Positions 7,584-31,071 of a stretch of 32,330 bases of DNA are shown here, piece after piece (position 1 is the stretch's first letter; every line of letters begins with the position of its first letter). The notes under the pieces were generated by a model that worked only from the letters and a program-made list of their open reading frames with translations, was not told the origin of the DNA and made no database searches. The DNA comes from Prasinococcaceae sp. CCMP 1430 (lineage: Eukaryota > Plantae > Prasinodermophyta): the NCBI GenBank assembly GCA_013416795.1, contig RQSC01001240.1, positions 72,406 to 104,735 of the forward strand. Direction: 5' to 3'. The position numbers and the translations under genes are program-made.

Positions 7584-7956
7584 NNNNNNNNNNNNNNNNN
7601 NNNNNNNNNNNNNNNNNNNNNNNNNNNNNNNNNNNNNNNNNNNNNNNNNNNNNNNNNNNNNNNNNNNNNNNNNNNNNNNNNNNNNNNNNNNNNNNNNNNN
7701 NNNNNNNNNNNNNNNNNNNNNNNNNNNNNNNNNNNNNNNNNNNNNNNNNNNNNNNNNNNNNNNNNNNNNNNNNNNNNNNNNNNNNNNNNNNNNNNNNNNN
7801 NNNNNNNNNNNNNNNNNNNNNNNNNNNNNNNNNNNNNNNNNNNNNNNNNNNNNNNNNNNNNNNNNNNNNNNNNNNNNNNNNNNNNNNNNNNNNNNNNNNN
7901 NNNNNNNNNNNNNNNNNNNNNNNNNNNNNNNNNNNNNNNNNNNNNNNNNNNNNNNN
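7584..7956. other. Assembly gap (373 N)
   Basis: Run of N bases. Confidence 1.
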
Positions 7957-9043: not shown

Positions 9044-10668
9044 TCAGACAACGCCCGCTGGCTTCTCCTTATCGCCGCCCCCTTGCGCCTTGGCCTCACG
9101 GTCGATCGCCCACGCGACCCACTTGTTTTGCTCCAGGATGGTCGTGTACGGGACGAGGGTCTGCGTGAGCTGCGTCTGCACGCCGGGAGCGACGCGCGCG
9201 CTCAGTCGCGGCCCGACAGCGCGGTACAGGGAGTTGAGAGCGAACACAGCAGCGGACAGAACACCTCGCGGTCGGAGCTCGAGGAGCTTCAGAAGCGCGG
9301 CACCTACGAGAGCGCGCATCGGTCAGCGGTCGGCGAACACTCGATGGGGCGCCGCCTGGGCGAGGCGCACGCGCAGGGCGACGCCGTCGCGACTCGCCAT
9401 CGCGGCGCGCGCGCACCTTGCGGGGCCTGCGCCGCCGAATACTCGCGGGCCGCGGAGCATACGTCGCCTCCCGATTCGCCCAGTCGGCAGAGCGCCTCGG
9501 AGAGGGCTTTGGCGTCTTGGAGGGCGCTGTTCGCCCCCTGACCGAGGGTGCCCCCCGTCGAGTGGGCAGCGTCGCCCAAAAGCACGGCAGCGCTCCCTGC
9601 GCGCTCGTTGGTGTACGCGTACGAGTCGCAGCTGACTATGGCTGAGCGAGTAGGCTTCTGAGCGACCACCGAGTTCGCGCTCTCTAGGGAGACGGCGCCG
9701 TATGACGGGAAGCGCTCGGCGATCAGTTCGCTGAGCTCGCGGCCATCTTCGCACGCAAGGAGATCACTGGGAGCGCTCTCATCCTCCCAGCTGACGAGTG
9801 TGCAGGTGTTGCCACCTGGCGCTGGGATGGAGAAGAGGCCAAATTTGCCTTTCGCCTTGTCCTTGTCATCCTTGGCGTAGCGCCCCCCGAAGGCGTGCAC
9901 CGCGTCTGGCTCAAGCCCAGACGGCATAGGGCCGTGGATGACCTTGAGCCCCCCCTTCAACTCGCGCGTGGCCGCCTCGCACGCACCGGCGTCTTGCATC
10001 GCCTGGCGCACACGCGAGCGCACGCCATCGGCCCCAACGAGCAGGTCGTACGCGTGCTCCTGCGTGCTGCCATTCGCGTAAGCCACCTCCACGTTCGAGG
10101 ACTCGAGATCTACGGAGGCAATCTGAGACTCGAACTCCAGCGAGACACGCCCGCCGTCCCCACCGAAGCGCTCGCGCAGCTCTCGGGCGAGCACTCCGCA
10201 CAGCACGCCGCGGTTGATGAGCAAGCTAGGGGGCACCCCGTCGGCGGCCTTCTGCCTTATGTTGAAGCGGCGAGTGTCCGTGGCGTGGATGAAGAAGCGG
10301 TCGGACGCGACGCCCTCGGAGTACACGGCGTCCCACAAGCCCGCGCTCGTAAGCGCGTCGCGCCCGCGCGCCCCCAGACCGATCGAGTATTGGCGGCCGG
10401 AGGCCGCGCTCGCGTCGGCAGACCAGTCGGGCCGGCGTTCGAATACGCTCACTCGCGCGGTTGGATCGCGTGCGAGGATGTCATGCGCCACGAGGAGGCC
10501 CGCGGGCCCACCGCCGGCCACCACGACGCGCAGGCCGCCATCGCGCTCGCCGCTCGCCGTCGCATCCTCGGCGGCTGCGCGAGGCTGTGCGCGCCGCACC
10601 GCCACGCGCGCCAAGCGCGGAGCGCGCGCCGAGCGCGCCGCCGGCGCATGGCCTGCTAGCACGGCCAT
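9044..10668 (-). CDS. FAD-dependent monooxygenase, kynurenine 3-monooxygenase-like, probable plastid transit peptide; complement(join(9044..9303,9417..10668)), ~503 aa
   Basis: Motifs VVVAGGGPAGL (GxGxxG), LLVGADGVRS, LLGDAAH and GQGANSALQD. Splicing 9416..9304 gives YSAAQAPQ-G-AALLKLLELRPRG and recruits the small 9044..9319 ORF as exon 2. The N-terminus MAVLAGHAPAARSARAPRLARVAVRRA is Ala/Arg-rich and lacks acidic residues. Confidence 0.88.
9304..9416 (-). other. Spliceosomal intron (113 bp, phase 1)
   Basis: Minus-strand donor GTGCGC at 9416, CTGAC at 9326-9322, acceptor CGTAG ending 9304. This acceptor TAG is the in-frame stop of the unspliced ORF. Confidence 0.88.
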
Positions 10669-11007
10669 CGTTTGCCCTGCGCGAGCCCTGCGCCCGACGC
10701 CAGTCGCCCGCCGTGTGCCTACCCTGACCCCCTGACTCCCTGACCCCTCCCCCCCCAGCGCAGGGCGGCGCACCGGAGGGCGCCCTGTCCGATCCGCTCG
10801 GGCACGCCCTGCGCGCGAACCCTCCCCAAACCCCTAAAACCAGCTCAGAACGCGAGCTCGCGCGTGCCGCCACACCGTTGGCGTTGACGCTCGGCGCCGC
10901 TCTGTCTGTGCCAAGTGGCAGCGCCTAGCGCCCTCCTCTCGCGCGCACGCGGCCGGGCGGTCGCCTGAGAAGATGGGCATGGGTGTGCTTCTTATTAAGG
11001 CGGCGCG

Positions 11008-12819
11008 TCAGAGGTCCAAGCTGCCATCTACGCCGCTCTCCCACTCGCCCAACTCACCGTTCGGGGGCGGCGGCGGCGGCACGCTTTCCCGCTCTCCCCC
11101 GAGCGCGGCCTGCTCCCTCAGTCCCTCCTTCTCCTCTTCAATGGCGGGATCTGGCAGCACGCCGAGGATCTTTCGGAAGAGGGGCGGGGTGTCGATGAGT
11201 CCGAAAGCGACCGCCACTGCCACCACCACCGTGGCCATCACAAACTGACGCACACACACGTACGCCAGGTCGATGCCGATTCGCTTCATCTCGGCCATGA
11301 TGCCCGTCTGTTCTCTCACAGGCACACTCTTGGGCTTTGCCGCCACGCCTTCCTCCGCGCCATCGCCACCGCCACCGCCACCGCCGGCCGCCCTCGCCTT
11401 CTCTGCACCTCCAGAGTCCCGCTCGACATTGGACTCGGGACTGGCCGCAGCGCCCTCGGCCGTCGGCGCCTCGAGCTGCTCGTGGCGTTCCTTTTCCTGG
11501 CCGGCCGGTGGGCTGGCACCCACGCCGGCGGGCATTTGTCCTGGCGCAGGCGTCGCAACAGCGGGCTCGAGCGCGTCGCCCTCGCGAAGGAGCTGGTGCA
11601 TGGACACCTTGCGCCCACGCAGCCTGCAGAATTCCTGCAGCTTGCGCATCTTGTTGAGCGTTCGCATCACCACGGGATCGTTCTGGTGGTGTGCCACCTC
11701 ACGGTAATCCGCACGCACTGCTTCAATGGCGGTGCGCACGTGGGGCCTCTGAAAGTCCGCCTGGAACTCGTCGTCCGAGCGGAACGCTTCCAACACAAGA
11801 GCGAGCTCCTTTTGCCACTTGGCCTCATCCGCGGCGTCCTTGTCACCCTTTGCCTCCGCGGCCTTCGCGGCTTTCTCATCGGCCCTCGCGGCGTCGCGCT
11901 CGGCGCGCTCGCTCTCGCCGGATCCGTGCACAGCTTTGCGCTTGCGAAGTGCGACGGCAGCCGCGCGGGCTTCGCGTGCTCGGAAGATCTCAGCCTCGTC
12001 CGCGGTCTCGGCGTCCGGCTCGGCGTCGAACGCTCTCTGCGGCAGGTGGTCCAGCGCCGTGTGGCCGTCGATGTCCTCGGCGTTGGGGTCTGCGCCGGCA
12101 TCGAGCAGCGCTTGCACTGCGCCGCCGCGTCCTGCGCGCGCTGCCGCGTGCAGGGGCGTTGCGCGGTCATCGTTGTCGGTGTCTTCGAGTTCGAGGCCGC
12201 GCGCGCGCAGGAGGCGGCACGCCCTGACGCCGCCACACGCCGCCGCGAAGTGCAGCAGGCTGGCGCCGCCCACGCGTGTGCCTTGCACGCGCGCCTTGGC
12301 GTCACACAGCGCTTCCATCATTTTTTCGTCGTCGCGCAACGCGGCCTCCGCGAGCGGCGTCATGCCCGCGCGCGACACCGCGTTGGCGTTGGCGCCCGCC
12401 TCGCAGAGCGCGCGCACCGTCTGGGCCGTCGCCTGCCGCGCGGCGAGCAGCAGGGGCGTCTCGTCGCCGCAGTCGGTGCTCTCCATCCACGCGCCCTTGG
12501 ATGCGAGCAGCGCCACCGCAGGCGCGTGGTCGTACAGCGCCGCGAGGTGCAGAGGCGTGCGGCCCGCCTTGTTGTCCACGTCGAGCTCGAGGCCCCTGCT
12601 GGTGAGAAACTTGATCACCTCGACGTGTCCCTTTGACGCTGCGATGTGCAGCGTGGTGTTGGCATTGTCGTCCTTGGCCGCCGGGTCGCATCCCGCCGCG
12701 ATCATGCGCGCCACTGCGGGCACGTCGCCCAGCAGGCACAAATGCAGCAGGCGCTGGTTGGCCGCATCCTGGTCCTTGGCCTGGTCGGCCGCAGCCTGGT
12801 ACGCCGGCGGCGCTGCCAT
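11008..12819 (-). CDS. Ankyrin-repeat protein with an STI1/HOP-DP-like domain and a C-terminal transmembrane helix, 603 aa
   Basis: Repeated TxLHxAA/TPL ankyrin motifs (~12760-12030). DDEFQADFQRPHVRTAIEAVRADYREVAHHQNDPVVMRTLNKM (~11775-11638) resembles the Tic40/Hop STI1 domain. Hydrophobic FVMATVVVAVAVAFGLI near the C-terminus. Confidence 0.85.
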   Translation of the reverse strand: MAAPPAYQAAADQAKDQDAANQRLLHLCLLGDVPAVARMIAAGCDPAAKDDNANTTLHIAASKGHVEVIKFLTSRGLELDVDNKAGRTPLHLAALYDHAPAVALLASKGAWMESTDCGDETPLLLAARQATAQTVRALCEAGANANAVSRAGMTPLAEAALRDDEKMMEALCDAKARVQGTRVGGASLLHFAAACGGVRACRLLRARGLELEDTDNDDRATPLHAAARAGRGGAVQALLDAGADPNAEDIDGHTALDHLPQRAFDAEPDAETADEAEIFRAREARAAAVALRKRKAVHGSGESERAERDAARADEKAAKAAEAKGDKDAADEAKWQKELALVLEAFRSDDEFQADFQRPHVRTAIEAVRADYREVAHHQNDPVVMRTLNKMRKLQEFCRLRGRKVSMHQLLREGDALEPAVATPAPGQMPAGVGASPPAGQEKERHEQLEAPTAEGAAASPESNVERDSGGAEKARAAGGGGGGGDGAEEGVAAKPKSVPVREQTGIMAEMKRIGIDLAYVCVRQFVMATVVVAVAVAFGLIDTPPLFRKILGVLPDPAIEEEKEGLREQAALGGERESVPPPPPPNGELGEWESGVDGSLDL

Positions 12820-13368
12820 CGGTGCCCCCGCTCAGTGGGACAGACACCTGCCACGGGGGGCGGGGGTGGGGGTGGTGATGGGGGGCGAGTTCCGCCCGTC
12901 AGCCGCCCCCCCTGCCTCCTCCTAGAGGCGCCTACCCCCTCCCACGTGCGTGGCCCTCGCTCACGTGCCCCCGGCCCGCGCCGCCGTCGCCTCCGCCGCC
13001 CCCATCGCCGCCCGCCCGCACTGTGGCACCGCAGCGTCGGCCCCGCCGCCGTTACCGTCGACAATTCGCGGAAAGGCAGATTTCGCGGCCGCGAATTGGA
13101 CTTCCGGAGAAGCGCGCGCGGAGACGAGGGGTGTTTGTGCGTGTGGTGGTGGTTGCGGTGGCGGTGGTGGTGGGGCTCTGGGCTGAGCGGGACGCGCGCC
13201 GGAGCGCGGGCTCGCCGCGGGCTGTCGCGTCGGCGGAGGAGCGCGAAGTGGGTGGTGCGCCGAGGGCGCGCGGGTGAGGGGGGTGGTGAGGGGGACGCAG
13301 AGTTGCGAGCCACGCCCGGGCCACGGGAGGGCTGGCGGGACCGGCCCCTTCGTCGCGGTGCTTTGGCC

Positions 13369-15339
13369 ATGGGCGGTGATGCACAGCCGAACCTGAGCGG
13401 CGGCTGGGTGGCCGACTTTCCAGCGGAGGGAAGCGGCGGCGGCGTCCAAGGCGGGAGCCAAGGCTACGAGGCAGGTGGTGGAGCAGCGGGCGCGCCAGGC
13501 GGTAGCGAGAGCGGCGACGACGGCTGGGGCGAGGAGGAGCTCTCGCCGGTCGATGCCTACGCCGCCGGGGGACTGTTTGCGACGGCGAGCGCCGGCGTGG
13601 AGGGCGCGCGCGGATGGGCGTGGGGGGGGTGGGATGCGCCACAGCGACGGGGCAGCGTCGGCGACGACCGAGCTGGGACGCCGCCGGCAGACTGCCTATG
13701 CATGCGCGTCTTCCAGACGCTCGGGCTGCCGGTGCGGACTGGCCACGCGCTCACCCTCCAGGCGGCCGAGTGCGACGAAGCCGACCGCGGTCACCTGGCC
13801 GCGCAGTTCGCCGAAGCGCTGAGCGACTCGGCGACGGCACGCGCGGCCGCTCTCGTGCGCGTTGCGTGCGCGTGCGTGGGCGCAGGCCTGGGCGCGGGCG
13901 GGGGCGCGGACGTTCCGCCCGTGTACGACGCTCGTGCTCGTGCCGCGCTGTGGGCAGTCGCCGTCTGGCTGGGAATGTCGCCCGCCGACGCGCGGAGGGC
14001 GGAACTGCGAGCGCTTGGGGCGGCGGCAGTCGACACCCTCGCCTTCGACCATGCGTCCACCGCCGAGGCGGCGTCTGCACAAGCAGACGGCGCCCCTGAG
14101 CGCGCGGCGGCGCTCACGAGCTCAAAGTTCCGCGCTGCCAAGGTCGCAGGCGCGTCGATCCTGGGCGGCACGCTGCTCGCGGTGACAGGCGGCCTCGCCG
14201 CGCCTGCGCTTGCCGGTGGCTTCGCGGCGATGGGCCTGGGGGGCGCCGTCACGACGGCGGCCACAGCGGCCACGGCTTCGACCGCCGCCGTCGGAGCGAC
14301 CTTCGGCGCTGCGGGCGCCGGCGTAGCCGGCTGGAAGATGTCCAAACGCACCGGCGGGCTCGACGGCTTCGGCCTCACCTCGCTGTGCGAGGGGCCCATA
14401 GCTGCCGCCGTGTGCGTGAACGGGTGGGTGAAAACTCCTGAGGACTTCAGTGCGCCATTCGAGTGCCTCGTCGAGCACCCGGCCTTTCGCGGCACCGCCG
14501 AGGTGTGCTTCCTGGAGTGGGAGCGCGAGGCCCTGCTAAAGCTGGGCAGCTCGCTCTACGACGTGGTCAAGAACCAGGCGGTGGGCTACGCGCTCAAGCA
14601 ATCCATAAAGTACTCGGCCCTCGCTACGCTCGCCACGGCGCTGGCGGCGCCCGCCGCGGTGGTGGCTGCAGCGGGCACGATCGACAACGTGTGGGGTACC
14701 ACCATGGACAAAGCGAAGCGCGGCGGCGTGCTGCTCGCGCACACGCTTCTCGAGCGCGCGCAGGGCGGGCGGCCTGTGGTGCTCGTTGGCATCTCGCTTG
14801 GGGCGCGCATGGTCTTCGCGTGCCTCGAGGAGTTGGCACGGCACGAGGAGCGTTTCCAGAATCAGCAGGATGGCGGCACGGGCACGAGCGGCCGTGGGCT
14901 CGTGCACCACGCCATTCTGCTGGGTGCACCTGTGACCGCCGCGCCCGCGCGATGGACCGCCGTTCGTAGCGTCGTCTCCGGCTCACTGGTGAACGCGTAC
15001 AGCCGCAATGATTGGTTGCTGGAGTGCCTCACGCGCGTGTGCCGCTGGGGTTCGCCTGCCGCGGGCCTCGCGGCCGTCCAGTGTGCTGGCGTACGCAATG
15101 TCGACTTGAGTGGCACCCGTGCTGGTCGCGGCGACTACTCGGCGGCGACAATGGCCCGAACTTGGCCGAGGCTTGTAGCAGCCACCGAGGGCGCCGACTT
15201 TGCGTTTCCCGCCGGCCAATGGGACGTGGTCGTGTCGGATGACGAGGATGAGGACCGGCTCGCGCGTGACCCAGAGGATGGAGGCGCGAATGTGGAGGGC
15301 GTGACGAGCTCGGACCCGCTTTGGAGCCCGGGCTTGTGA
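13369..15339 (+). CDS. DUF726 / TMCO4 / Mil1-like membrane alpha/beta-hydrolase-fold protein, ~656 aa
   Basis: Gly/Ala-rich TM hairpin GGTLLAVTGGLAAPALAGG, then IDNVWGTTMDKAKRGGVLLA, RPVVLVGISLGARMVFACLEELA (GxSxG) and NAYSRNDWLL. Start taken at the first ATG after the GC-rich leader. Confidence 0.92.
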   Translation: MGGDAQPNLSGGWVADFPAEGSGGGVQGGSQGYEAGGGAAGAPGGSESGDDGWGEEELSPVDAYAAGGLFATASAGVEGARGWAWGGWDAPQRRGSVGDDRAGTPPADCLCMRVFQTLGLPVRTGHALTLQAAECDEADRGHLAAQFAEALSDSATARAAALVRVACACVGAGLGAGGGADVPPVYDARARAALWAVAVWLGMSPADARRAELRALGAAAVDTLAFDHASTAEAASAQADGAPERAAALTSSKFRAAKVAGASILGGTLLAVTGGLAAPALAGGFAAMGLGGAVTTAATAATASTAAVGATFGAAGAGVAGWKMSKRTGGLDGFGLTSLCEGPIAAAVCVNGWVKTPEDFSAPFECLVEHPAFRGTAEVCFLEWEREALLKLGSSLYDVVKNQAVGYALKQSIKYSALATLATALAAPAAVVAAAGTIDNVWGTTMDKAKRGGVLLAHTLLERAQGGRPVVLVGISLGARMVFACLEELARHEERFQNQQDGGTGTSGRGLVHHAILLGAPVTAAPARWTAVRSVVSGSLVNAYSRNDWLLECLTRVCRWGSPAAGLAAVQCAGVRNVDLSGTRAGRGDYSAATMARTWPRLVAATEGADFAFPAGQWDVVVSDDEDEDRLARDPEDGGANVEGVTSSDPLWSPGL

Positions 15340-15877: not shown

Positions 15878-18577
15878 ATGTGCGCAACGAGCGCGGCGGA
15901 CGCCGCATCGGCCGCTCAAGAGCGCGACGCGCGCGCAGCCCCGGCGCCCGGTGGGCGACCGCCAGCGCTCTCTCGCTGCGAGCACCTGTGTGGTGACCCT
16001 GCGGCGGGCAGGCGCTGCAAGTCGGCGACGGAGGGGGCGCACACGCGCACATGCTCAGCACATGCGCCCGAGGCGCTCGCCGAAATCCGCACGCGCTCGT
16101 ACGCGCAAGCAGAGGCCACTGCCCCCGCGGAGCCCAGGCGGCGGCATCGGCGCCTCGAGACGGCCTGCGCGCGGCCCAGTCATGCCCCACCGGCGGTCGA
16201 CGTGTGCGCGCTCTTCCCGTGCCGGGCAGCCGCATTCGCCGAGACGGGTGCGCGCTGGCCGCTGCACGTGGACCTCGGCTGCGCAAAGGGTGGTCTCGTG
16301 CTCGCCCTTGCGGCCGCTCGCGCGGACACGTGCTTTCTGGGCGTCGAATTCCGTTCTGAGCTCGTAGAAGCCGCCAACGAGCTCGTGAGGGAGCGGGGTC
16401 TCGCGAACGCTGCCTTTGTCGTGGGGGACGTGGCCGCCGAAGGCTCGGACGATGCCGTCGCCTCTGGCTTTGGCGCTCTGACCGACGAGCCCTCGAGTCC
16501 GCTGTGCAGGCTCCTCGCGTCGGCCCGCCGGGGGGGGGCGGAGATAGTCGGCGTCAGCGTGCTGTTCCCCTCGCCGCTCAACCCTCGACGCAGGGAGAAT
16601 CCCAAGACGTCGAATCGCGATGGATCCAGCAACGGGGGCACCGGCGACGCGCGCTACATGCGGCGCGTGGCCGACGGCAGCGGCGCGAATCGCCGCTTGA
16701 AGACACAACGCCTCCTGACCCCGGTAGGTGCGCGTGCTGTAAGCGCGCACCTCACGTGCGGTGGGGAGCTGCACGTCGCCTCGGACTACGAGGGGATTGC
16801 GACCTCACTGTGCGCTGCCGTGCGGCAGGGCGACCGCTTGGGCGTTGGGGAACCCTGCCCGTCACGGCTGAGAGAGCGAAACGCTGTGTGGGAGGCGTCA
16901 CCGACGCTCGGATTGCCAACCGAGCGGGACCGCGTCTGCCAGGTGGAGTGGCGCCCTGTCTGGCGAAAGGTGTGGGTTGCGATCGGGACGCCGCAGGAGC
17001 TTTCGCCGACCAGCGGCGACAACGCCGGCGACCGCCTAGTGGCGACGTCACATGAATCTGCAGAAATTCAAGGCTCGCTCGGAGGAGACGGGCCGGTGGG
17101 GGACGCTACAGGCTCAGGTGTGGGCGCAGGCGCAACTGTTCTCGTGCGTGAGGGCGGGTGCGAGCTGCGCGTGTCCGCAAGACTGGCGTCATCACCGGGC
17201 GGGACGGCGGGCTTCTTCAATCCGCGCATGCGCGCCAACCGCGAATTTGCACTCGCAGCGCTGGCGGCTGCGACCGCTCTACGGTTGCGTGAGAGCGGCC
17301 AGCCAACCGCACACGCCCTTGACGCCTGCGCGGCGTCTGGAGCTCTTGGTCTCCGCTGGGCCACACAGGGGCAGTCCGCAGCTGCCGCCGCCGCGCGCGC
17401 CGTCCGGCCGCTCGACACTCGACCGCTTCCCGAGATACGAGTGCACCTCAACGACCTCGACGAGCAGTGCGTGCGCCTCTGCGAGGTCAACGTTACGGCG
17501 AACGGCCTGTCGACGCGCGTTGAGGCCGTGCATGCGCGCGACTGCCGCGCGCTGTTGTGCGAGCGCGTCTTCGATTTCGTGCACCTCGATCCCTTTGGCA
17601 GCGTGGCGCCACAGCTTGACGCTGCCTTTGGCTCGGCGCCGCACGGCAGCGTCGTCTCTCTCACCGCCACCGACACTGCGGCCATATACGGAATCTATCC
17701 CAGGTGCGAGCATCTGCGCGCGGCGTGTGCCCGTCCTCGCCGTAGCGGCCGCGTGCGCTCAGGAAGCGCGTGGCAGAGGGGTCTCTGACGCGCATGCGCG
17801 CGCGCCGTCGCGCGCCGCTGCATCCGCAGGGTCGGACTTCGCCTGTACGGTGCGAGGGTCTCCCGTCGTGTGCCTGCGTTTCGCGAGTGCGGCGCTCGCG
17901 CGCTCGCCGCCGCTTGCGTGTACGCCGCTGCGCGCCACGGCCGCGGTGTGTCCGTGCTGCGTGTCGCCGCGACTGAGCACTTCGTTTCGATGGCCGTCGG
18001 TGTTCGCAGAGGCATGCGCCACGCCGACGCATCGCTCGACCGCGTGAGGCGCTGTCGCTACGCGCCACGCACCGACACGTACGATTGGCTGGGGGAGGAG
18101 GCCCCTTCGGAGGAGTACGCAGAGGTTGCTGGCGGCGACCAGGGCGAGATGTTGGGTCCTCTTTGGAGCGGCCCGATTTTCGACGCGGAGTGGGTGCGCG
18201 CCGAGTGCGCCGCGCTCGAGGAGGCCGCGCCCGACGGCCCCGCGATTGGCATTCTGCGCAAGGTGGCGATGGAGGCCTCTTGTGACGAGGGCGACGAGGG
18301 CGACGCTTGCTTCTACCACGAGGTGCACAGCGCCTCGCGGCGCGTAGGGGTGACGGACGCGCCGCGGCTCGCACGCGTTTTGGAGCGCATCAACGAGCGC
18401 GCGCGCGGCCGCGGTGGCGGCGAAGGCGGCCGCGCTTGCGCCGCCGCCGCCGCCACACACTTCGAGGCCGGGCGCATACGATCCGCGGGAGGCGCGCGCG
18501 CCATCGAGGACGCCATACGCTCGCTCGCCGAGGAGCGCAGCTCGCTCGCCGAGGAGCGCCCCTCGATCATGTTGTAA
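15878..18577 (+). CDS. tRNA methyltransferase fusion: CCCH zinc-finger-like + TrmB(m7G46)-like + Trm1/TRMT1L-like; join(15878..17703,17830..18577), ~857 aa
   Basis: TrmB motifs: LHVDLGCAKG, FLGVEFRSELV, VSVLFPSP, GGELHVASD, PTERDR. Trm1 motifs: FFNPRMRANR, LDACAASGALGLRWA, VHLNDL, FDFVHLDPFG, LTATD, EHFV, LGPLWSGPIF. No stop lies between the two domains. Splicing gives IYPR|VGLRLYG. The start could alternatively be 15683. Confidence 0.85.
17704..17829 (+). other. Spliceosomal intron (126 bp, phase 2)
   Basis: Donor GTGCGA at 17704, CTGAC at 17785-17789 (contains the in-frame TGA), acceptor CGCAG ending 17829. Confidence 0.88.
18519..18559 (+). repeat. 20-bp direct repeat, period 21, encoding SLAEER x2 at the C-terminus of the fusion protein
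   Basis: gctcgctcgccgaggagcgc at 18519-18538 and 18540-18559. Confidence 0.85.
18573..18577 (+). terminator. TGTAA polyadenylation-type signal overlapping the TAA stop codon
   Basis: ...ATG TTG TAA. TAA is otherwise rare here, as most stops are TGA. Confidence 0.4.
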
Positions 18578-19822: not shown

Positions 19823-20077
19823 CTCGCGGGCTCTATCGAAAGTTGCAATCGTGGAAGCGCTCGGGAGAGTGAAGTGACGAAGGGTTGTGGGGAGGTCAGA
19901 ACGAAGGCGTCGGCGCGCGGCGGCCTGCTGCGGATCGGGCGGGATTGCGCCGTCGTCGTCGCGCCTGCGCAGCGGCGTCCTTCTCAGCCCATGCGCGGAC
20001 GAATTGCTCGCGCGTCGGGCCATTCCACGAGCGGCCGCGGCAGCGCGGCCGCGCGTCGGCGCGGTGGCTGCGCCGCG

Positions 20078-23000
20078 ATGTTCTCGCGGCTGCTCGCAGA
20101 CGTCGTGGCGGGGCTGCTGGGCTCGTTCGTGGAGGGCGTGGCGGCATCGCAGGTGGCGGCGTCGCTACTGCGCGGATCGTTCACGCTGCGGGACCTCGTT
20201 CTGAGGCGCGACGCGCTCGAGGCGCTCGGCGGCGCCGCACAGCCGCTTGCGCTCCGCGCCGGCGTGGTGCGCTGGTTGTCCATCAGCGTGCGCTGGCGCT
20301 CGCTCGCACTGCTCGTCAGTGTGAGCGGCGTCGAGCTCGAGCTGGCGCCGCGCGATGAGCGCAGCTACAGTGCCGAGGCCACCGCGCGCGCGCACGCGAC
20401 GTGGCGAGAGAGGCGCCTCCGCGCGGATGAGGCAGCTCATGTCGCACGACACGCAGGCGCCGGAGCCGGTGCCGGCACTAGTGGCAGCACTGGCCCCGGG
20501 CGCGGAGTGGACGGCGGCGGCGGCATGGCGCTGCTGCGCTCGCCTGCGGCCACCAAGCTGCTGGCGAGGCTCGCCCGGCGCATCAAAGTCCAGCTGAGCG
20601 TGGAGCGCGTGAGCATACGTCACTCGGCGTGCGCGGTGGCCCGCGTGAGCGACGGGGGGCTCAGGAGAGAGCACGCGCTCGCGTTGTGGCTGGAGGCGCT
20701 CAGCGTGACGTCGATGGGGGGCACAGAGGCCACAGACGCCCTCGGCCCCGCCGCGGTGGGCCAGACCGCCCTGGTAGCCATGCGTCTTGAGCTGCAAGGG
20801 TTAGCGCTGAGCTGGGAGGAGCAGCACTACGCGCGTGCGCGCGCGCGAGAGGGCGAGGCGAGAACGACCGCTGATGCCTGCGCAGGCGTGGGCGAGCGCG
20901 TCGGTTCGAGGCACGAGGCACGACTGCTCGAGTGCAGCGCGCTGGCGCACATTGGGTGGGTTCCTGCAGAAGAGAGCCGCGGGGACGTCGACGTCAGCAC
21001 GCAGCGCGTCCTTGCGCGCATGCGTGTTGGCCAAGTGCGCTCGCGTGCGGACGCGCGCGCACTGGCGGACGCCGTGGCGCTGTCGGACGCGCTCGCGCTG
21101 GCGACCACACGTGCGCGCGTGTGGCAGTACCGCCCGCACTGCCTCGAGGGAGGACCGACCGTGGCCCCGCCGCGCGTCGAGGTGCAGCCCGGTGGCACCA
21201 GCAGCGACGTTGCTGACCGCCGCAGCAGCGCGTGGGTGCCTCAGTGGTGGCGATACGCCGCGCGCGCGGTGCTGGCGGTGCGCCACGAGTGCGGCGCGGT
21301 CGGCGTGGAGACGTTGCGCTGGTACGCGCGCGAGGGCATTGCACTGCGGCGACGCTACAGCGAGTTGTACGCGCGCCGCTTTGAGCGCCTGTTGCGTGCG
21401 CCGCTGGCGCCCAGCGCTTTCCTGGATGAGCAATGCGCAGCGCTCGAAGAAGACATGCCCACACACGACGTTCTCGCGTGTAGGGTGGAGGCCGTGTCCA
21501 AGGCTGTGGAGCGGATGGGAAGCGTCACTGATGGGGGAACGGGTGGGAACGCGGGGTCCAACATGCAAGGGAGCAGTATTGGCAGCGGTAGTGGCGACAG
21601 TGGGCGCAGTCGCAGCGGTAGCAACAGCGACAGCGGCGCAGTGTCAGGGAATATCACCCCCATCCCTGTCTCTTCGAGTGCTACGTTTGCGATAGGCGGA
21701 GGCCACGCGCACGATCAGCTCGGAGCTGGAGAGCCGACCGATGGTGGCAGTGGGACACGCGACGGCAATGCGGAGCGGGCGGTGGCGTCATCGGGCCTGC
21801 TCGCAGGCCTGTACTCGATGTCCGCCACAGCGGTGTACAGTGTGCTCGGCTTTTCGCGCACACACAGTGAGACGCTGGACGGCGAAGTTGCGCGAGAGTT
21901 GTCGGCAGCAGGAGGAGGCGCCGTTGCCGCCGCAGCGCCTCATAGCGACGGTGAAGACGATGTGGCCATGCAGCAGCTCATGCGCAGTCTACAAGGGCTC
22001 GAAGCTGAGGCTGAAAGAGTGGTACAGGCAGGTGGCGTCCAAGGAGATGGGGAGCTTCTGGGAGACTCTACCTCTGCGTCGCCGTCCCTAGCGTCCGCTT
22101 CTCCGCTCGGCAACGTGCACCTTACGCTTGAAGCACAGATTGACGGCCTTGATGTGGCACTGCAAGCGGACAGCGGAGTTGGGGACGCCCTTTGGCTGCG
22201 CACTAGTGCCGTGGAGTGCGACACGCAGGTGAACGAGGGCGGTGTACTGTCAGCAGCGGTGCGATGCAGCCGTGCGAGCATTTCGACGAGCGATGGGACT
22301 GGCGCCAACTCGGGAGCGGAGATTCTCACACTTGGAGGAAGTGCTTGTGAGGGCGATCAATGCAAACAGACCGCTGCCAAAGATGCGTTGTGGCTGAATG
22401 TTTCGCATCAGCTCGTCGCGACTGGTAGCGGTGGGAGAGACCGCGTCGAGTGCTTGCTGGATCGCGTGCGATACGGACACGACGTACACGTTGCGGCGCT
22501 CATCGCGCGCCTCGTCGCCGCAGTGCCACCGCCGCACGCGGCGCGCGTTGCTGCTGCCGTGGCGTCCCTGTCCGAGCGGGGCCAAGCTGTCGCCATGCTT
22601 GATCAAATTGCACCAAAAGGAGATTCGAGGCGGGAAGCGCACGACGTGTGCGAGCTCGCCCGCCAGCCCACAACGATAGTCGTGCGAGTCAGTGACATGC
22701 AGGCATGTGTCGGGGAGCGCGTACGCCTGGAATGCGCAGCACTCGAGGGGCGCGTGACTCCTGCAGCCGTGTGCGAGGCGGATCTGATTGGCGCAGTCTT
22801 CGGCCGTGGACAAGGCACGGATGCCGACGCATGGCCCCAGCGTGCCACGCAATTCGTGCGCGTGAAGACAGACGCGCGCATAGTGGCAGCAGGGACGGAG
22901 GTCATTCACATTGATGAAGCATGCATTGAGGCACGGCAGACCCCGCTGCCATTGGCAGACCAGCCGCGCGTGGCTATTGATTTGACTTTCTCCCCTGTTG

Positions 23001-26000
23001 TGATCGAGGCGCGCTCGCACGCCATCAGCGCCATCGGCATGGCGCTCGACGAGATGCAAGCGGGGTCATCGACCGAGCCAGCCGCTGGTGAGAGTGTGCC
23101 CGTGCAGTCGGACGCCAAGGCGAATACGCTGGCACTGGCGCTGTCCACGCCGCTGCTTGCACTTTCGGTGCCTCTGAATGGAGCAGAGCGCTGCGTGGCC
23201 GCTGTGCTGGGTGACGTGCACGTTTCCTTCCGAGCTGAATCGAATGGCAAGAGGACTGCAGCTGCGCGCAGTGGGCGCGTGGGAATGCTCATCGCCGCTC
23301 CTGCCCAGGTAGCCAGCGTCCCCGACCGCGCAGAACCACTCGACATTGAGTTGTCTGGCGGCGAGGTCGCCTCTTGCAGTGGTTCTGATGCGGTTGAGAT
23401 CGCGCTCGATTCTCATGTGCCGTCGAATGTATACGAGCTGCGCGTGCGCGCTCGCGGTGTCCGTGGTCGCATTGACAGTCGCGTGAAGGATGCGCTCGTC
23501 GAAGCAACACAAGTGTGCTCTGTACTCGCAGATGCCTCCGAGAACTCCACAGCTTTGGGTAAACGCCAAGCGGAGGACGAACGTTTGAGCAGCGACGGGA
23601 CATGCGAGAGCACCAAGTGCGGCGCGGCGGACACTATCAACACATCTGTCGATAGGTCGGCGCAACAGGCTGGGCCCGTTGCGCTGGCATGGGTCGATAT
23701 TGGCACGACAAATGTTGGCCTGAGCGACGACAGAGGAGACTTTGCATTCGCACAGTTCGAGCACTGCGGCGCGCAGGTGACTCTGGACCGAGACGGCAAC
23801 GGACCGCGTGCCAAAGTGATGCTGAACGGGATGCGCGTGCTGTGTGACATCGTGCCGCATGAGGCAATCCTCGGCCACAGCGACCTAGAAGGGGCGTCGC
23901 AGTCAACGATCGAGATTCTGTTCGAGGGAGCATCCAACCCTTTGCGCGTTTTGCTCTGCGACCACTCGATCGCGGTCACGTGGCCGTTTAATGACAGGCT
24001 GGCAGCGTTCCTGCAGCCACCGCAAGACGTGGGCGCGTGCTCGGTCGATGCGGCGGGACGTGACGAGGTAGTTGGCCATGGAACGCCACAAGGCTTCCTC
24101 TCGGACGATGCGGCACCGCCTGCGCTCTCTGAAGGGGAGGTGGCTGGCGAGTCCACCTTCCCAGTACCGCTTGCCATCGAGCTGCAACGTTGCGTTGTGC
24201 GCTACCCGCACAGGCCCGGCAGCGGCTCGCTGATTGCAATGAAGATTTTCATGCCCAGGCTGACCATGTCTCTCCCTGAGTATCCCGAAGTTACGCCGAG
24301 CATGCGCCCAGCTTTCGCTGAAGCGTGCGCAATCGACAACATCAGGTTCAACTTTTTTGGGCTGGACGTGTCAATGGAGATGCCGACTGGCGAGACACCA
24401 AGCAAGACGCACGACGTGCCAATAGTGTGTGGACTGCGCGGCGTCCTCGAGTTCGCCATGTACGTGGCCGATGGTACGAGCGTGTATGAGGTCTACACAT
24501 GGGACCTGGAGCGGTTGCGTGTGTGCGTGAGCGAATTATGCCCCCTCGCAGGCGCGATATGGAAACATAGGGAGGGCACACCGAACAAGCCAGGGCCACC
24601 GACTAGCAGCGTGTACCAGCTTGCAGGAGTAGACGCGACAGTTGGTTTCAGCTCGGAGCTCTCACGCGCGCGCGCAAACTCTGCAAGTGCTGGTTGTGTG
24701 GCAGTTAGCCTCGAGCGCGGCGCAATCGAGACGTACACGAATGCGGACGGGGACACTGACGCGGACGTATTCGTTGAAGAGTTGCGAGTGGCGCACCTTG
24801 CTGCGGGTGCGTGTGCTTCGAGCGAATGGGATGAATTCGAGGAGTGCGCGCTGTTGGCTCTGCAAATGGCGCGTGGGGGCGATGCCGGCATCCATGTACG
24901 CACAATATCGCGTGGAGGGTGCACCCACGCGCACGTGTCGCTCACGGACATTGAGCTGTGTGCCGTGCCGGGGCGCGTTGCAGAGTGCTCGGTGGCAGGA
25001 GCTGCGATGGATCACGGACAAGTATATGCGGCTGAACTGTATGACGAGGAGCCGCTTCCGGAGCACGATGTTTCAGACGCAGAGCCTGGCGCGTCGGCGT
25101 CTGCCGTTGCTTGTGAGGTCTGCATCGGTGGCTTGAAAGTACGCGTGCCACTACCACACCGGCAGGCTGGAGCAGACAGCGACATATTGCTTCTGGGGCG
25201 ACTTTCCGGCGCTGCGGATCAGGCATCACCGTTGCCGCTACCGTTCTTCTCTCCGGACTTGAGCGCAGTGCTCGCCAGCTTCTCGGGCATCACGGTGGCC
25301 GCGCGGCACGATGCGCGTGCAGGGGCCAACGTGCGTGTGGCTGTCACCGAATCCCTCTTGGGCATCTCGCGGGAAGTCGTCGCTGCTCTGCGCGCGCTAG
25401 AGACGCAGGTACAGGCCGTGAGTGCAGATGACACCATTGTGAATGCGATTGGCGACCGTGATGAGAGCGGCACCTCTGCAGGTCCGAGCTGCGCAGAGGC
25501 ATCCCCGCTGCATCTGTCGGTTCCGAAGCTCGACGTGTCTGTGCGTCTTCTGCGGGTTGCTGCAACGCTTGTTGAAGACGGCTCGCCGCTTATGCGCCTA
25601 TCACTTGCGAATCTCGACGCGAGCCTGTCTGCGAGCGAAGGCATGCGAAGCGCATCCATGGATGCGTCCGCTTTGGTCGCGCTGGATTTGCGCAGTGCCG
25701 ACCTCGGCATGTGGGAGCCTGCTGTTGAGTCCTTCGATTTGCGCGCGAGTGTGAGGCGGCATCAATGGCACGCACGTCGCGAACTTGACGTGGTGCGTGT
25801 GAGCATCGCAGAGGAGCGCGCACTCAACATCAATATGTCACAATCGATAGCCGAGGGCGCGGCGCATGCGCACCTTGCGCTCACGTCGCACGAGCGCCCT
25901 GGCTGGCTGAGTGGCAAGGCGATCCGCAACGAAACGGGAGTGCAGCTTGAGTATTGGCACGTGCGCGCACACACAGACGTCCCGCTCGAGCGCATATGCA

Positions 26001-29000
26001 ATGCTCGCGTCCCGGATGGCATTTTGCGTGCGGACGAAGCCACGGGCGATATGCGGGCGGACGAGCGCGTGCGCACACACATTGTTGTGAGGGTGGCTGG
26101 TAGCAGCACATGCTCACCCTGCCTCGCATGGAAGCGCACAACTCGTGCGAGCTTCGAGGCAGCATTCGATGTTGAGAGAGAAGGGTCTTTCAGTCGCACC
26201 ATCACGTGCTTGGTGGACGCAGCACAGCAGGGCCGATGCCTCCGCGTGCTCGCACCCGTTGGCGTGTGCAACTCGCTCGACCTACCGATGGAAGTGTGCT
26301 TCACAGCAAGAGCAGGTCGAAGCGCCGACGAGAGCGCACGTGCTGGCGGCGATTCTGTGCAGCTGATGCCGGGTGAGTACGCGCCAATTCCCGCGGACCT
26401 CTCTGACGATGCGAGTCTGCGCGTGCGGCCCTTCGAGACGCTTGGATGGAGCGGTGAAAGCAAGACTACGCATGAGTGGAGCGAGCCGCTGATGTTTGGA
26501 TCCATGCTTGAGGTTGCGCGCGGTGGCCGCGCCCGCTATGTGCGCTGCGGACCGGCACGGGGCATGCGCGTCGCACCGCCAATCCATTGCAGCGTGCTGT
26601 CCGTGCCAGCCGAGGTGCGCGTTGGTGGTGGCAGTAGTGGCGCTCACTTGCGTCCCGAAGTGTCCTGGTTGTCGCTCAGTCCGACCTTGCAGCTCAGCAA
26701 CGACCTGCCTTGCGATATCGAGATGCTGGTCAAGGGGCCGGGCGTCTCGAGTGCCACGCAAGAGGTTTCAATGGTGGCAGGATCTGTGGACAACATACAC
26801 GGTTTCGATCCCAGGTGAGACGAGCGACGAAACGGGACCGCACAGTGCACAGAGTGCACTCGCCCGGCCGCAAAGATGTTGATACGCTCGTTCTGACGCA
26901 CGCGCGTGCTCTCCCAACGCACTGTCGTAGATATGACATCCAGGTGGCTGTCCAATTGCAGGGGTATGAACAGTCGGCGATGTGCGCTATCAGTCCCGAG
27001 TATGACTTGGGGTTGACGGCGGGCTCACAGGGCCCACGGCAGCGCATCATGCTCACGCTCGTGCCATGCTATCATGATTCTCTGTGTGTGCGACGTCCGG
27101 TGACTGTCGAAGTACTGGCTGAGCGCCTCGCGGGGGGCGCTCGGCGCGTGTCGGTGTCGTGCTCGCTAGTTGTCTTCAATCTGTCGCCATTCGATCTGAA
27201 GCTTGAGCTCGATGCGGGAATGGACGATTCAGTACAAGAGCTCGTTATGGGCGCGATGGGGGCCAGCGCGGCCACCATGGTGGCTGGCGCGCACGCGCAT
27301 TCGAGCGATCGCCCTGAAAGGGCGGAGGTGAGCCCGCGCCTGGCGTCGTGCGCGCCCCCACCAGCGGGCTCGGGGCGTGCGGAGGAGCAAAGTGCAACTC
27401 CCGAGCCGCACAGTATCGACTCCAGTATCGGCGGCATTCCCTTGAGATTGTCGGATGCTTTCGAGGATAGCATCAGCCCGGTCTCGGCGGCGCCGTCGCC
27501 GACGCGTAGGGGGGGCTCTCCCGTGCGAAGGTCCGAGTCGCGCGAACTCAGTGGTACTCCGCGTGCAATTTCCCTGCGCTCGGCAGGCGCCCACGAGCTC
27601 GAGGGTGCGATCTACAGCTCGCCCGACGAGGATGTGTCTGCTCCGCCCGTGCGGCGACTTCGCTGTGCCGTGCACGCGCGTCCTGCCACCGGCGTTGAGT
27701 GGGGCTTCGCGCGCACGGAGATTGACCTTGCACAGGCAGGTGTCACTGAGACTGTCCGCGTGCGAGGGAGGTGGGCCAGCGACAGCGACGAGACTGTCGC
27801 GCGGTCGCTCGAATATGGTCTTGCGTTCGAGCACGTCATTTCTGCGCGCCACCTCCACAAGACGCTAGTGGTGCGCGCGCGCTACGAGTTCGCAAATCTC
27901 ACATCTCGAACGATCGCCTACGCACAGGAGGACGGGCCCGAGCACGTACTCCAGCCTGGCGAAGTGCGCCCAGTGTGCGTCACGCGCGTGCGATCGCGCG
28001 CATTGGCGGCTCTTGGAGTACGCGCACCAGCATGGTTTCGCGTCCGCTTCGATGAACCCGGCTGGGAGGCGAGTGGGGCCTTTCCCTTGGACTTTGCGGG
28101 CACTGCCACGCTGAAGCTGCGCCACTTCGACGTGCAACGAACTGTGCTGTTGAAGCTCGACGCGCGCCCAAGAGACACAGCGGCGGCCTCCACGGCGCTC
28201 GATGCGGGGCTCGGCGGAGAAAGTGACGCGACTGAGTGGGCGCTGGGCGCTGCCACGCGCATATGCCTGAGCGAGCACGACGGGCGCTGGCCATATCGTG
28301 TGATCAACTTGAGCAGCGTGCGCGTGCTTGTTGAGCAGGCGGGCGTAGGCCCTAGCGCACGCCCGGCATTGTTGGCCCCGCACAACGGCTGGTGTGAGTA
28401 TGCGTGGGACGAGCCCTTCGCACGCACGCGTCGGCTGCGAGTGGTGGATGCATGCGAGCGCACCATAGCCGTGTGTGCACTCGAGGTGAGCGACGCGCCT
28501 CCTACCTACCGTGAGAGCGCAGAGGGAGAATGGATCGGCAGGCGTTTCCTCAGCAGCACAGTAGGTTGGCTCGGTGCTTGGACTGGCGTGGCATATGCTC
28601 GCTGCGCGCGTGTGCTGCGGAAGCGGCTCACGCGAGGGGGAGACAGTGCGCGCACGAGGGTGCGCGTGCGCGTGGTGAGCGAGGGCAGCCTTCGCGTCCT
28701 TCAAATTCTGGACGAGCGGCCAGTGGGCAGCAGGCAAGCGTCGGTGCCTATGCGCGCGCGAGCGCTCAGCCTGATGCGCCCAGCGGACGGTCCGCGTCGG
28801 TCTGAGAGCGCAGAAGCGCCGGCGACCGATCTGCACTTGGAGTTGTGCGTTGGCACGGTGGGCCTGTCGCTCATCGATGATGCTGCGCGCGCCGAGATTG
28901 CGTACGCGTGTGTTCACGGGCTACGCCTCGCGCGTGCCGACGAGCCCACTGGCGAGACCGCGTACGAGCTGATTTGCGAAGAACTGCGCGTGGACAATCA

Positions 29001-31071
29001 AAACGGCATTGGAGCCAGCGGCGCTGGTGAGGGCTTCGTGGCCGTGCTATGGAACGGCGGGTTGCGCAGGCGCGGTGGCGGCATTGTTGCCCTGCCTGGG
29101 GCAGCGTTGCTCCCGCCTGCACTGCGCCTGCGCGTGCGCCAGGCTCAAGGGCGCGGGAACGAGCGTGCGAGCGCAGTCCATCTTCGCGCGATCTTGGTAG
29201 ATGTGGCGCCTCTGCATGTGCAGTTGGAGGACACGTTCGCGCGATCGTTGCTTGAGCTGGGCGAGGGCCTTGCCGACGCTGCGCAGCTGGGTCGCGGAGG
29301 TTATTTGGCTGCAGGCAATCCACGCGCTGGCGCGGCTGCGGCCGCGGGTGTGCCGGCATTGGGGTCACTGCCCACTTCCCCGGTTGGAAAGGCTCGCCGC
29401 ATGCACTTACGACGCGCGCACAGCGGGGGGGGCGGGCAGGCGCACGCGGATGTGCTTGGCGGTCTCCGCCGCGATACCTTAGGCTCGAGCTCGAGCCTGA
29501 GCAGCGAAGGCGCTCGCGCCCCTCTGGAGAGCACGACGGACCGGGCGGCCACCTCGCTGTCCCTGCACGTTGATCGCGTGCGGGTGTCGGCCCTTTCGAT
29601 ATTTCTTTCGTACAGCAGTTCGGCGCTGCCGACCGCACTGGTCACGCACGGCGCGCTTGGGGGCGTCGGACCGAGCAGCGACGTCGCACGGCTCGCGATG
29701 CGCGCCGCGTACCGCATGCTCTCGTGCGACAATCTGCCGCTCTCCTTCCGCGCGATGGAGCTTGAACACCGCAGCGTGGTCGGCGCGTCCGCGGCAGAGT
29801 GTGTGGGAGAGCTGCTACGCGGGGCGCTGCCGCGTTACCGCTGGCAGGCAATCGGCATGATCTTCCGTGTGCTGCTCTCTGCAGATCTCTTCGCCAATTC
29901 GACGGGCGTCCTCATGGCGATTGCGGAGGGCGTCAGCAGCTTCGTGCGCCACCCATTGCGCGGGCTCGCGCGGCTCAACGCCGATGAGGCGCTCGAGGGC
30001 ATGGCGCAGGGCTGCACGGCGCTCGCGGCGGGTGCGGGCGTGGCGGCACTCACTGGTTTGGCACGCATGAGCGCGTTCGGTCACCGGCTCTGCGTGGCAG
30101 TGCTGGAGCTCAATCAGCAATACCTCGCCGAGGAGGGCGGTGGTGGGCGCGTCTCGCGCGCGAGCTCGCGGCGCGGGCGGGCGCGTGAGGGCAGCGTATT
30201 GGCCAGTGCAGGTAGGGGGCTCACGGCACTCCTGTCGTCCTTCGTCCAGGGCGTGGAGAGCGGGGACCCAATGCGACTGCTGCGAGGCACTCTGCTCGGC
30301 GTCCTGGGCGCAGTGGCCCGCCCCGGAGCGGCAGCGTTCCACACCATCTTCCGCGCGGCGCAGAGCGGACGCGGCGCCATCCGCGGATTGCCGCCACCGC
30401 GCGTGCGGCCGCCGCGCTACCTAAACCCCGTCGGTGCGCTGGCCGAGTACGACGCAGGCGCGTCCGAGGCGCACATGTTGCTGGGGCTCGCGCTCGAGGG
30501 TGAACACCCACTCGAGCTTCGCGCCAGCTCGGGTGCTGCCCCGGGGGCGGCCGACGAAGGCGGTGCCCTCGTGGCGACCGCCGCGGTGGTGCGGCGCTCG
30601 GGCCTTCCGCAGGCAGTGCCGACGCCGGCAGCCGCGGTCGCCGGCGACGTCGGTAGCGCCGAGCGGCGCGTTGGCGTTGCGTGCCACGCTGTGGTGCGCG
30701 ACGGCATCGCCGCATGCCTCGCGCGCGAGGATGTGGCCGTGGAAGAGCGCGCCATGGTGTTGTGGTGCGCGCAGGCCGGCGAGGTGTTGTGGCAGCGCCT
30801 CGACGAGAGCGGGCGCGTGCTCGAGGTCGTTTCGCTGGCGCCGCCGCTGCCAAGCGCGTGCGGCATCGGCAGGTTGCGCGCTCTGAGCCACAGCGTGGCC
30901 GCGCAGGGCGGGCTGCCTTTGGTGACGTGCCAGCTGGAGTTCGGTGACGCCTGCGAGGCCGCCCGTTTCTCGCGCGTGTTGGCCGCCGCGACTTCGGGAC
31001 GGCGGGCGCCCAGGCCCGTCGTGTGGTCCGCGGGGTTCGCGCGGCCGCGCGGCCGGGGCATGCGCGCGTGA
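20078..31071 (+). CDS. VPS13: VPS13-family bridge-like lipid transfer protein; join(20078..26814,26931..31071), ~3625 aa
   Basis: Chorein-N-like start MFSRLLADVVAGLLGSFVEG...SLLRGSFTLRDLVLRRDAL and WWRYA motif. VAB/SHR-BD-like segments MWEPAVESF, IRNETG, YEFANLT, PYRVINLS and YAWDEP. C-terminal GVSSFVRHPLRG and GVLGAVARPG helices. Splicing gives HGFDPR|YDIQVAVQLQGY. Confidence 0.9.
26815..26930 (+). other. Spliceosomal intron of VPS13 (116 bp, phase 2)
   Basis: Donor GTGAGA at 26815, CTGAC at 26893-26897, acceptor CGTAG ending 26930. The nearby AGs at 26943 and 26961 give the wrong frame. Confidence 0.85.

Follow-up and report, generated by a model that had tools for sequence, protein, structure and literature searches.

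We report that positions 15878-18577 of the window, a 32,330-nucleotide stretch of contig RQSC01001240.1 (assembly GCA_013416795.1, positions 72,406 to 104,735, deposited as Prasinococcaceae sp. CCMP 1430), are one nuclear gene of the marine green alga Prasinoderma coloniale, which encodes a protein of 857 amino acids (aa) with three modules: an N-terminal CCCH zinc finger of the TRM13 type, a domain like the tRNA methyltransferase TrmB/Trm8 and a Trm1-like tRNA methyltransferase domain. TrmB/Trm8 and Trm1 are separate enzymes that modify neighbouring positions in the tRNA core. Sequence comparison confirms that the TrmB-type and Trm1-family domains are fused in a single polypeptide, as an earlier note based on the DNA sequence alone had claimed, and our data suggest, by a modest preference, that an active enzyme forming N2,N2-dimethylguanosine (m2,2G) is here combined with a catalytically weakened, TrmB-derived tRNA-binding module. 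The gene and its parts, all on the forward strand, are as follows.

15878..18577, forward strand: whole gene, two exons in a single frame, from ATG 15878 to TAA 18575-18577
15878..17703, forward strand: exon 1 (aa 1-608 and two bases of codon 609), which holds the zinc finger, the TrmB-like domain, the linker and the first half of the Trm1-like domain
17704..17829, forward strand: intron (126 nt, GT..AG) with an in-frame TGA
17830..18577, forward strand: exon 2 (aa 609-857), which holds the second half of the Trm1-like domain (Pfam TRM profile positions 167-345) and the stop
15977..16063, forward strand: CCCH zinc-finger-like motif, TRM13 type (C34, C47, C59 and H62 invariant in family alignment A8)
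16139..16159, forward strand: conserved basic motif RR(H/Y)RRLE(T/S), which separates the finger from the TrmB-like domain
16250..16978, forward strand: TrmB/Trm8-like Rossmann domain (aa 125-367, Pfam PF02390)
16565..16576, forward strand: FPSP motif, with Ser232 in place of the Asp in FPDP(W), which corresponds to D144 of Escherichia coli TrmB and to LFPD of human METTL1
16577..16702, forward strand: lineage-specific insertion of 42 aa (aa 234-275) at the site of the basic KxRHxKRR tRNA-binding patch of TrmB
16781..16786, forward strand: Ser302-Asp303 pair, the retained equivalent of E. coli T179-D180 and Aquifex aeolicus T132-D133
16979..17134, forward strand: linker (aa 368-419), rich in Gly, Ser, Thr and Asp, predicted to be disordered, with a predicted local confidence (pLDDT) of 27-40 in the full-length model
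17135..17703, forward strand: N-terminal half of the Trm1-like (TRMT1L-like) domain, with the S-adenosylmethionine (SAM) motifs LDA at 17318 and ND at 17450, and with DPFG at 17588-17599

From ATG 15878 the frame runs without a stop as far as 17788 and is picked up again through the TAA at 18575-18577, and the sole stop in the frame of the gene is the TGA within the intron, which has phase 2 and a length that is a multiple of three. Removal of the intron gives the 857-aa product and a gap-free alignment to an intron-less relative, P0002. At >90% identity the protein clusters with EukProt PRCOL_00006862-RA from P. coloniale (P0167, 774 aa; genome described in PMC7455551) and with open reading frames (ORFs) on Tara Oceans contigs. 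The start codon and the intron of P0167 are identical to ours, and the start codon is also matched by 636-aa ORFs on the Tara contigs. P0167 ends with '...FYHEG', having spliced out approximately 84 C-terminal residues (18323-18577). These residues align to the C-terminus of P0002, and the indels found there among six haplotypes (the window, L001 and L094-L097) are of 9 bp and 3 bp, that is in-frame; we therefore prefer the 857-aa read-through model, and the 3' end of the public model PRCOL_00006862 is probably mis-spliced. Upstream of the ATG, the same haplotypes show approximately 40 indel columns over 538 bp, and hence this part is non-coding. The TAA stop forms the last three bases of a TGTAA at 18573-18577.

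Both enzyme families were recognised above the curated Pfam cut-offs. Methyltransf_4 (PF02390) matches aa 128-184 with 47.7 bits (up to 50.7; cut-off 24), covering only positions 3-59 of the 173 of the profile, while TRM (PF02005) matches aa 446-607 with 77.3 bits and exon 2 with 35.4 bits (cut-off 27), with a joint coverage of profile positions 21-345 of 376. The best NCBIfam matches are likewise the TrmB and Trm1 models. That the frame is open through the linker is weak evidence for one gene, given that the DNA of the window has 70% G+C and that antisense ORFs of >300 aa are common in it; with approximately 0.019 stops per random codon, the chance of no stop over 52 codons is approximately 0.35, which multiplied by 1/3 for being in frame gives approximately 0.1. 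In addition, the periodicity of G+C over codon positions is too weak in this genome to show that the linker or the N-terminus is coding. The proof of a single gene rests instead on homologues and population data.

The family was found by an exhaustive HMMER search of representatives followed by Pfam; a word-indexed protein search (608-aa query; alignment A1) was swamped by Ala-rich words and returned P0001 and P0002 only. It is a small, conserved family that P. coloniale has in common with haptophyte-type algae. Four other proteins have the identical order of TRM13-type CCCH finger, TrmB-like and Trm1-like domains, and in a fifth line of sequences these are preceded by a further methyltransferase domain.

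P0008: Prymnesium parvum, KAL1522384.1 / UniRef100_A0AB34JP75, 789 aa; finger, TrmB-like, Trm1-like
P0012: uncultured, 897 aa; finger, TrmB-like, Trm1-like
P0131/P0151: assembly GCA_035092305.1, 820 aa; finger, TrmB-like, Trm1-like
P0044: partial sequence; finger, TrmB-like, Trm1-like
P0350/P0352: 1221 aa in one ORF; tRNA_U5-meth_tr (TrmA/Trm2-like, 266 bits), finger and TrmB-like (FPDPW intact), Trm1-like

Several of the relatives are metagenome ORFs from a prokaryotic gene finder. On its contig of 25 kb, from a marine metagenome, P0352 (L013:6001-9666) stands alone between genes that run in the opposite direction. A scan of metagenome loci with A8 gave mostly bacterial TrmB and a few Trm1-like sequences, and tblastn of the fetched loci showed no fusion beyond L001, L008 and L013.

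The relative P0002 (539 aa, from marine metagenomes) is 39% identical to aa 20-110 and 57% identical to aa 423-842 of the P. coloniale protein, and is without aa 111-422. It thus matches both flanks of the TrmB part, and the N-terminus and the Trm1 part therefore belong to one protein. The junction itself recurs in five or more independent assemblies of metagenomes, the 636-aa ORF is also encoded on further contigs, and among the six haplotypes exon 1, linker included, has zero indels while exon 2 has only indels of 3n. An artefact, that is two adjacent genes or a mis-assembly joined in frame by chance in G+C-rich DNA, could draw on the long chance ORFs of the window and on the estimate given above for an in-frame open linker, but it is rendered very improbable by the repeated junction, by the homologous fusions in other taxa, by P0002 with the same N-terminus joined to Trm1 and by the indel-free linker. 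The linker is also, with its 156 bp, too short for a 3' UTR (untranslated region) and a promoter. It has no TGTAA, the usual green-algal poly(A) signal; this pentamer occurs in the window at chance frequency, a copy overlaps the stop codon of this gene and another falls inside its TrmB-like part, and the positions of the pentamer are therefore uninformative.

The earlier note had accordingly read the gene well in most respects: its single frame and 857-aa spliced product, its domain spans (approximately 16250-16985 and 17150-18500) and its Gly/Ser-rich linker are correct, both Pfam families that it named for checking were recovered, and the assembly error that it had considered at the junction is contradicted by the independent assemblies. 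Its statement that the only intron lies inside the Trm1 part, so that the fusion does not depend on a splice model, also holds, since everything from the N-terminus to the middle of the Trm1 domain, TrmB-like domain and linker included, is encoded by exon 1. It was incomplete in that its two-domain architecture passed over the N-terminal finger, and its Trm1-family domain, correct as to family, is probably TRMT1L-like rather than canonical Trm1 as judged from the tree and the matches of P0004 (see below).

The N-terminal module was recognised by profile comparison. Pfam zf-TRM13_CCCH (PF11722) gave no match for aa 1-110 of the P. coloniale copy at E up to 10; the profile is matched by the relatives P0008, P0012, P0091, P0097 and P0098 at the same N-terminal position, and hhalign of the N-terminus encoded in the window against such N-termini of the relatives gave a probability of 95.4% (E 1.8e-8). 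In the basic motif that follows the finger, R91, R92, L93 and E94 are invariant across the fusion family and in P0002. A finger and a TrmB-like domain without Trm1 are found in P0091, P0097, P0102 and P0136; for P0091 and P0136 the contigs confirm that the protein stands by itself. We considered whether P0002 could represent the ancestral state, into which TrmB was inserted later, and rejected this on two grounds: the finger and the RRLE motif accompany TrmB in the standalone P0136, P0085 and P0091, and standalone Trm1L relatives are without the finger and the RRLE motif. Another double methyltransferase around the finger-TrmB unit was seen in P0098 (684 aa, JGI metagenome), which holds a TRM13-like/class I methyltransferase, zf-TRM13_CCCH and a canonical TrmB in one protein.

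For the Trm1-like domain, an alignment of approximately 290 residues to Trm1 structures was obtained (3axs of A. aeolicus, E 4e-20; 2dul of Pyrococcus horikoshii, E 1.1e-18), in which DPFG and TATD are included. The residues D571-P-F-G574, D482, D526 and D555 are invariant in family alignment A8 and match motifs of 3axs and 2dul, and the domain is modelled at pLDDT >90. In the Trm1 tree the P. coloniale protein groups with P0002, the haptophyte-type fusions form the sister group of this pair (97/88), and all of these fall inside an algal clade together with Cymbomonas and other standalone proteins of the algal type. This clade is sister to metazoan TRMT1L (93/90), a branch that includes proteins of a sponge, a crinoid and a brachiopod, and lies apart from prokaryotic Trm1 (100/99); canonical eukaryotic TRMT1 is not included in the tree. 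Among the best 120 matches of the nearest named standalone relative, P0004 of Cymbomonas, none is named TRMT1 and the named vertebrate ones are TRMT1L, and P0002 is approximately 31% identical to a mammalian TRMT1L. Placement of the Trm1 part in the TRMT1L branch is on these sequence grounds likely but not proven, the tree being one without canonical eukaryotic TRMT1. The P0002 loci showed no synteny with the locus in the window, and hence it is the tree that carries the orthology. NCBI gives the name TRMT1-like to proteins of a crinoid, a sponge and a brachiopod (P0015, P0022, P0084), and the algal clade is their sister group; TRMT1L orthologues have been stated to be vertebrate-only (PMC11831618). 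Human TRMT1L makes m2,2G27 in tRNA-Tyr (PMC11834103, PMC11831618).

The TrmB-like domain is of the TrmB family by profile as well as by predicted structure. The profile of the zinc finger-TrmB subfamily matches E. coli TrmB (3dxx) with E 2.3e-18, followed by Bacillus subtilis TrmB, yeast Trm8 and human METTL1. An AlphaFold2 model of aa 100-375 (pLDDT 76, predicted TM-score (pTM) 0.76) gave Foldseek matches in the PDB of which ranks 1-27 are all TrmB/Trm8/METTL1, with E 6.5e-11 to 5e-8 and a target-normalised TM-score up to 0.70. Motifs I-III for binding of S-adenosylmethionine (SAM) are conserved in the family alignments (D132, G134, G138, E157, D184), and the C-terminal T348..D351 motif is kept. 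The S302-D303 pair, invariant in the family (alignments A3, A4 and A8), is aligned by HMMER to the 'ATD' of E. coli 3dxx; this T/S-D pair (A. aeolicus T132-D133, E. coli T179-D180) is the proposed catalytic centre (PMC6320965, PMC10130221).

Other parts of the active site have changed. The P. coloniale FPSPL is aligned to the FFPDPW motif of E. coli, with the Trp lost as well; the 13 other aligned relatives all have Asp at the position of Ser232, which makes P. coloniale the sole exception among 14, and all environmental haplotypes with coverage of this site have Ser232. In B. subtilis TrmB the equivalent Asp hydrogen-bonds the SAM adenine, and in E. coli TrmB the D144A change abolishes multiple-turnover activity and makes single turnover >150-fold slower, while tRNA is bound 2.5-fold tighter than by the wild type and full methylation is reached at high enzyme concentration (PMC10130221). 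Change of LFPD to AFPA is the usual catalytic-dead mutant in published METTL1 studies. The 42-aa insertion has pLDDT <50 in both the domain and the full-length models; of the E. coli basic patch H151, R154 and R155, R278 alone aligns (with R155, by HMMER) and the rest is replaced by the insertion. The canonical patch is kept by the standalone zinc finger-TrmB relatives, and zinc finger-TrmB proteins of the eukaryotic type are the nearest kin of the domain among those compared. There is a second insertion, of 17 aa, in the P. coloniale domain. The TrmB-domain tree places the P. coloniale copy as sister to the clade of haptophyte type (83/82) and gives it an end branch of 1.72, compared to a median of 0.77.

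Among the six haplotypes, the ratio of non-synonymous to synonymous polymorphism (pN/pS) is 0.38 for the zinc-finger N-terminus, 0.37 for the TrmB-like domain (17 synonymous and 17 non-synonymous; binomial p = 0.0036 versus neutrality), 0.53 for the linker and 0.09 for the exon 1 part of Trm1. The TrmB-like domain is thus still selected, its ratio being significantly below 1, and far less tightly so than the Trm1 core. Synonymous diversity (pS) is 0.056-0.081 in 15878-17144, the finger/TrmB half, and 3-5 times lower, at 0.016-0.026, in 17145-18577, which comprises the Trm1 half together with the intron; a sweep might account for this drop inside the gene, as might a boundary of recombination.

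How, then, might the protein work? According to the reading that we favour at slightly better than even odds, the C-terminal Trm1-like domain would be the working enzyme, forming m2,2G at tRNA G26 and/or G27 in a SAM-dependent manner. In the ancestral fusion, as in Prymnesium, m2,2G formation would have been accompanied by formation of 7-methylguanosine at position 46 (m7G46) by the TrmB module, on a neighbouring face of the tRNA core. This module would, in the Prasinoderma lineage, have lost the Asp that contacts the SAM adenine together with the basic patch, and would be retained with the zinc finger under purifying selection as a part that binds or positions tRNA, with little or no m7G activity; in the lineage of P0002 it would have been deleted altogether. 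Activity of the Trm1 part is suggested by the retained DPFG, LDA and ND, the alignment to structures, the pLDDT >90, the pN/pS of 0.09 and the placement in the tree. Weakening of the TrmB part is suggested by Ser232, the insertion in place of the basic patch, the long branch and the clean deletion in the sister lineage P0002, and a TrmB module without the Asp may still bind tRNA well because E. coli D144A does. Several considerations weigh against this reading. The putative catalytic centre S302-D303, motifs I-III and T348..D351 are all intact, so that residual or even normal m7G activity is conceivable; Ser232 might still form the hydrogen bond to N6 of the SAM adenine; and D144A is slow rather than dead, and a tethered second tRNA-binding domain could compensate. 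As to the Trm1 part, its presumed target, 26 or 27, is drawn from kinship with TRMT1L.

The earlier note had offered both a bifunctional enzyme and an RNA-binding helper, and it is the helper that has gained from Ser232, from the loss of the Trp and, apparently, of the basic patch, and from the deletion in P0002. A bifunctional protein, with both domains active and with m7G46 and m2,2G26/27 formed on the same tRNA, is on balance unlikely but deserves to be taken seriously: the fused Trm1 domain and the finger would supply the tRNA affinity, such that Ser232 and the insertion are tolerated. It would fit with the purifying selection on the TrmB-like domain, with the retention of S302-D303, motifs I-III and the C-terminal T..D, and with the full methylation by D144A at high enzyme concentration (PMC10130221), and the fact that relatives with an intact FPDP share the layout, one of them with an added TrmA-like domain, suggests a family that combines activities. 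It fits poorly with Ser232 being unique among the aligned members, with the loss of the equivalents of Trp146, His151 and Arg154 and a disordered insertion instead, with the very long branch, and with a domain that was dispensable in the sister lineage. Fast evolution alongside continuing purifying selection, lineage-specific insertions on the substrate-binding face and a retained Rossmann core with the Asp303 centre could also be taken to mean that the TrmB-like domain has a new job, acting on another nucleotide or RNA target or in another reaction, neither m7G46 formation nor passive binding. This we consider improbable, as nothing points positively to a new active site; the domain has lost conserved residues rather than gained any, and the insertions are predicted to be disordered.

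If an active m2,2G enzyme with a weakened TrmB module is the correct reading, the relatives with intact motifs, P. coloniale and P0002 would form a three-step series, active, weakened and lost, that shows how a catalytic domain becomes a helper and then disappears. A conserved natural TrmB-Trm1 fusion, together with the triple fusion that includes a TrmA-like domain, would be genetic evidence of a functional coupling of the modifications, and such fusions would lend themselves directly to the study of tRNA modification that is ordered or cooperative. TRMT1L is linked to human neurological disease, and algal and invertebrate proteins that group with it would change the view of its origin. All of this functional significance is read from sequence. 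Only tentatively would we go further and propose that marine algae have natural tRNA-core multi-enzymes with two to three coupled methyltransferases acting on one tRNA (m7G46, m2,2G26/27 and 5-methyluridine at position 54, m5U54), that P. coloniale represents a later stage with a pseudoenzyme module, and that proteins of the TRMT1L type are far older than vertebrates, contrary to PMC11831618.

With respect to the surroundings of the gene, its neighbours in the window encode a WRKY-domain protein, a FAD-binding monooxygenase, an ankyrin-repeat protein, a DUF726 protein, a very large VPS13/ATG2-like protein and a protein of the PEP-mutase/isocitrate-lyase family (46-1683, 9307-10773(-), 11011-12819(-), 12646-15336, 19874-31068 and 31269-32285(-); the minus sign marks the reverse strand), and none of these is tRNA-related. 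The DUF726 gene lies upstream in the Tara haplotypes too. No tRNA or Rfam RNA was found within the window. At approximately 7600-7950, far from the fusion gene, G+C falls to 0.00-0.20 in windows of 200 bases, most likely owing to a run of N, that is an assembly gap. Among other proteins with a Trm1 domain, the P0050 cluster (35 members, approximately 609 aa) and P0063 (666 aa) have a SpoU_methylase (TrmL/TrmH-type 2'-O-methylase) joined to it; some of these proteins are named TrmL at their source, and this fusion is recurrent and apparently prokaryotic.

In the open-access papers covered we found no description of the finger-TrmB-Trm1 layout, in agreement with the earlier note, whose author knew of none. 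The layout is already in public databases, unstudied, as the Prymnesium parvum entry, named 'Zinc finger CCCH-type TRM13 domain-containing protein' in UniRef, and as the P. coloniale annotation; the domain pair is therefore not unique to the present gene. Compared with its Prymnesium-type relatives (P0008, P0012, P0151 and P0350/P0352), the P. coloniale protein shares the order of CCCH finger, RRLES motif, TrmB-like and Trm1-like domains, and the TrmB-like and Trm1-like parts of these relatives are both sister to its own. Unlike P. coloniale they keep the Asp of FPDP, they are without its insertions and have big insertions within the Trm1 domain instead, and only P0350/P0352 has the extra N-terminal TrmA/Trm2-like m5U domain.

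With TrmB/Trm8/METTL1 (PF02390), the P. coloniale domain has in common the fold, SAM motifs I-III and the T/S-D pair, but it lies in the middle of a protein and is preceded by a CCCH finger, its FPDPW has become FPSPL, a 42-aa insertion takes the place of the KxRHxKRR patch and there is the second insertion of 17 aa. A partner of the WDR4/Trm82 type was not seen, with no search aimed at one. The finger keeps the CCCH ligands and the spacing pattern of the finger of Trm13, a tRNA 2'-O-methyltransferase (PF11722), and differs from it by a two-residue insertion and an extra Cys, and in being joined to a TrmB-like domain and not to the Trm13 catalytic domain. The TRMT1L/Trm1 family (PF02005) shares with the P. 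coloniale protein the catalytic domain with DPFG, the SAM-binding Asp residues and the C-terminal domain, and TRMT1L likewise carries zinc-finger motifs (PMC11831618); in P. coloniale, however, the N-terminus carries a TRM13-type finger and the TrmB-like domain in place of the additions found in animals, and its C-terminal 'THFDP..IRTDAP' motif is degenerate. The closest functional analogy to the ancestral form is E. coli RlmKL (YcbY), in which methyltransferases for N7 and for N2 of guanine are naturally fused and which forms m7G2069 and m2G2445, neighbouring nucleotides of 23S rRNA, with both halves active (PMC3351187, PMC3367195); it differs in being bacterial, in its rRNA substrate and in having domains unrelated to the TrmB or Trm1 families.

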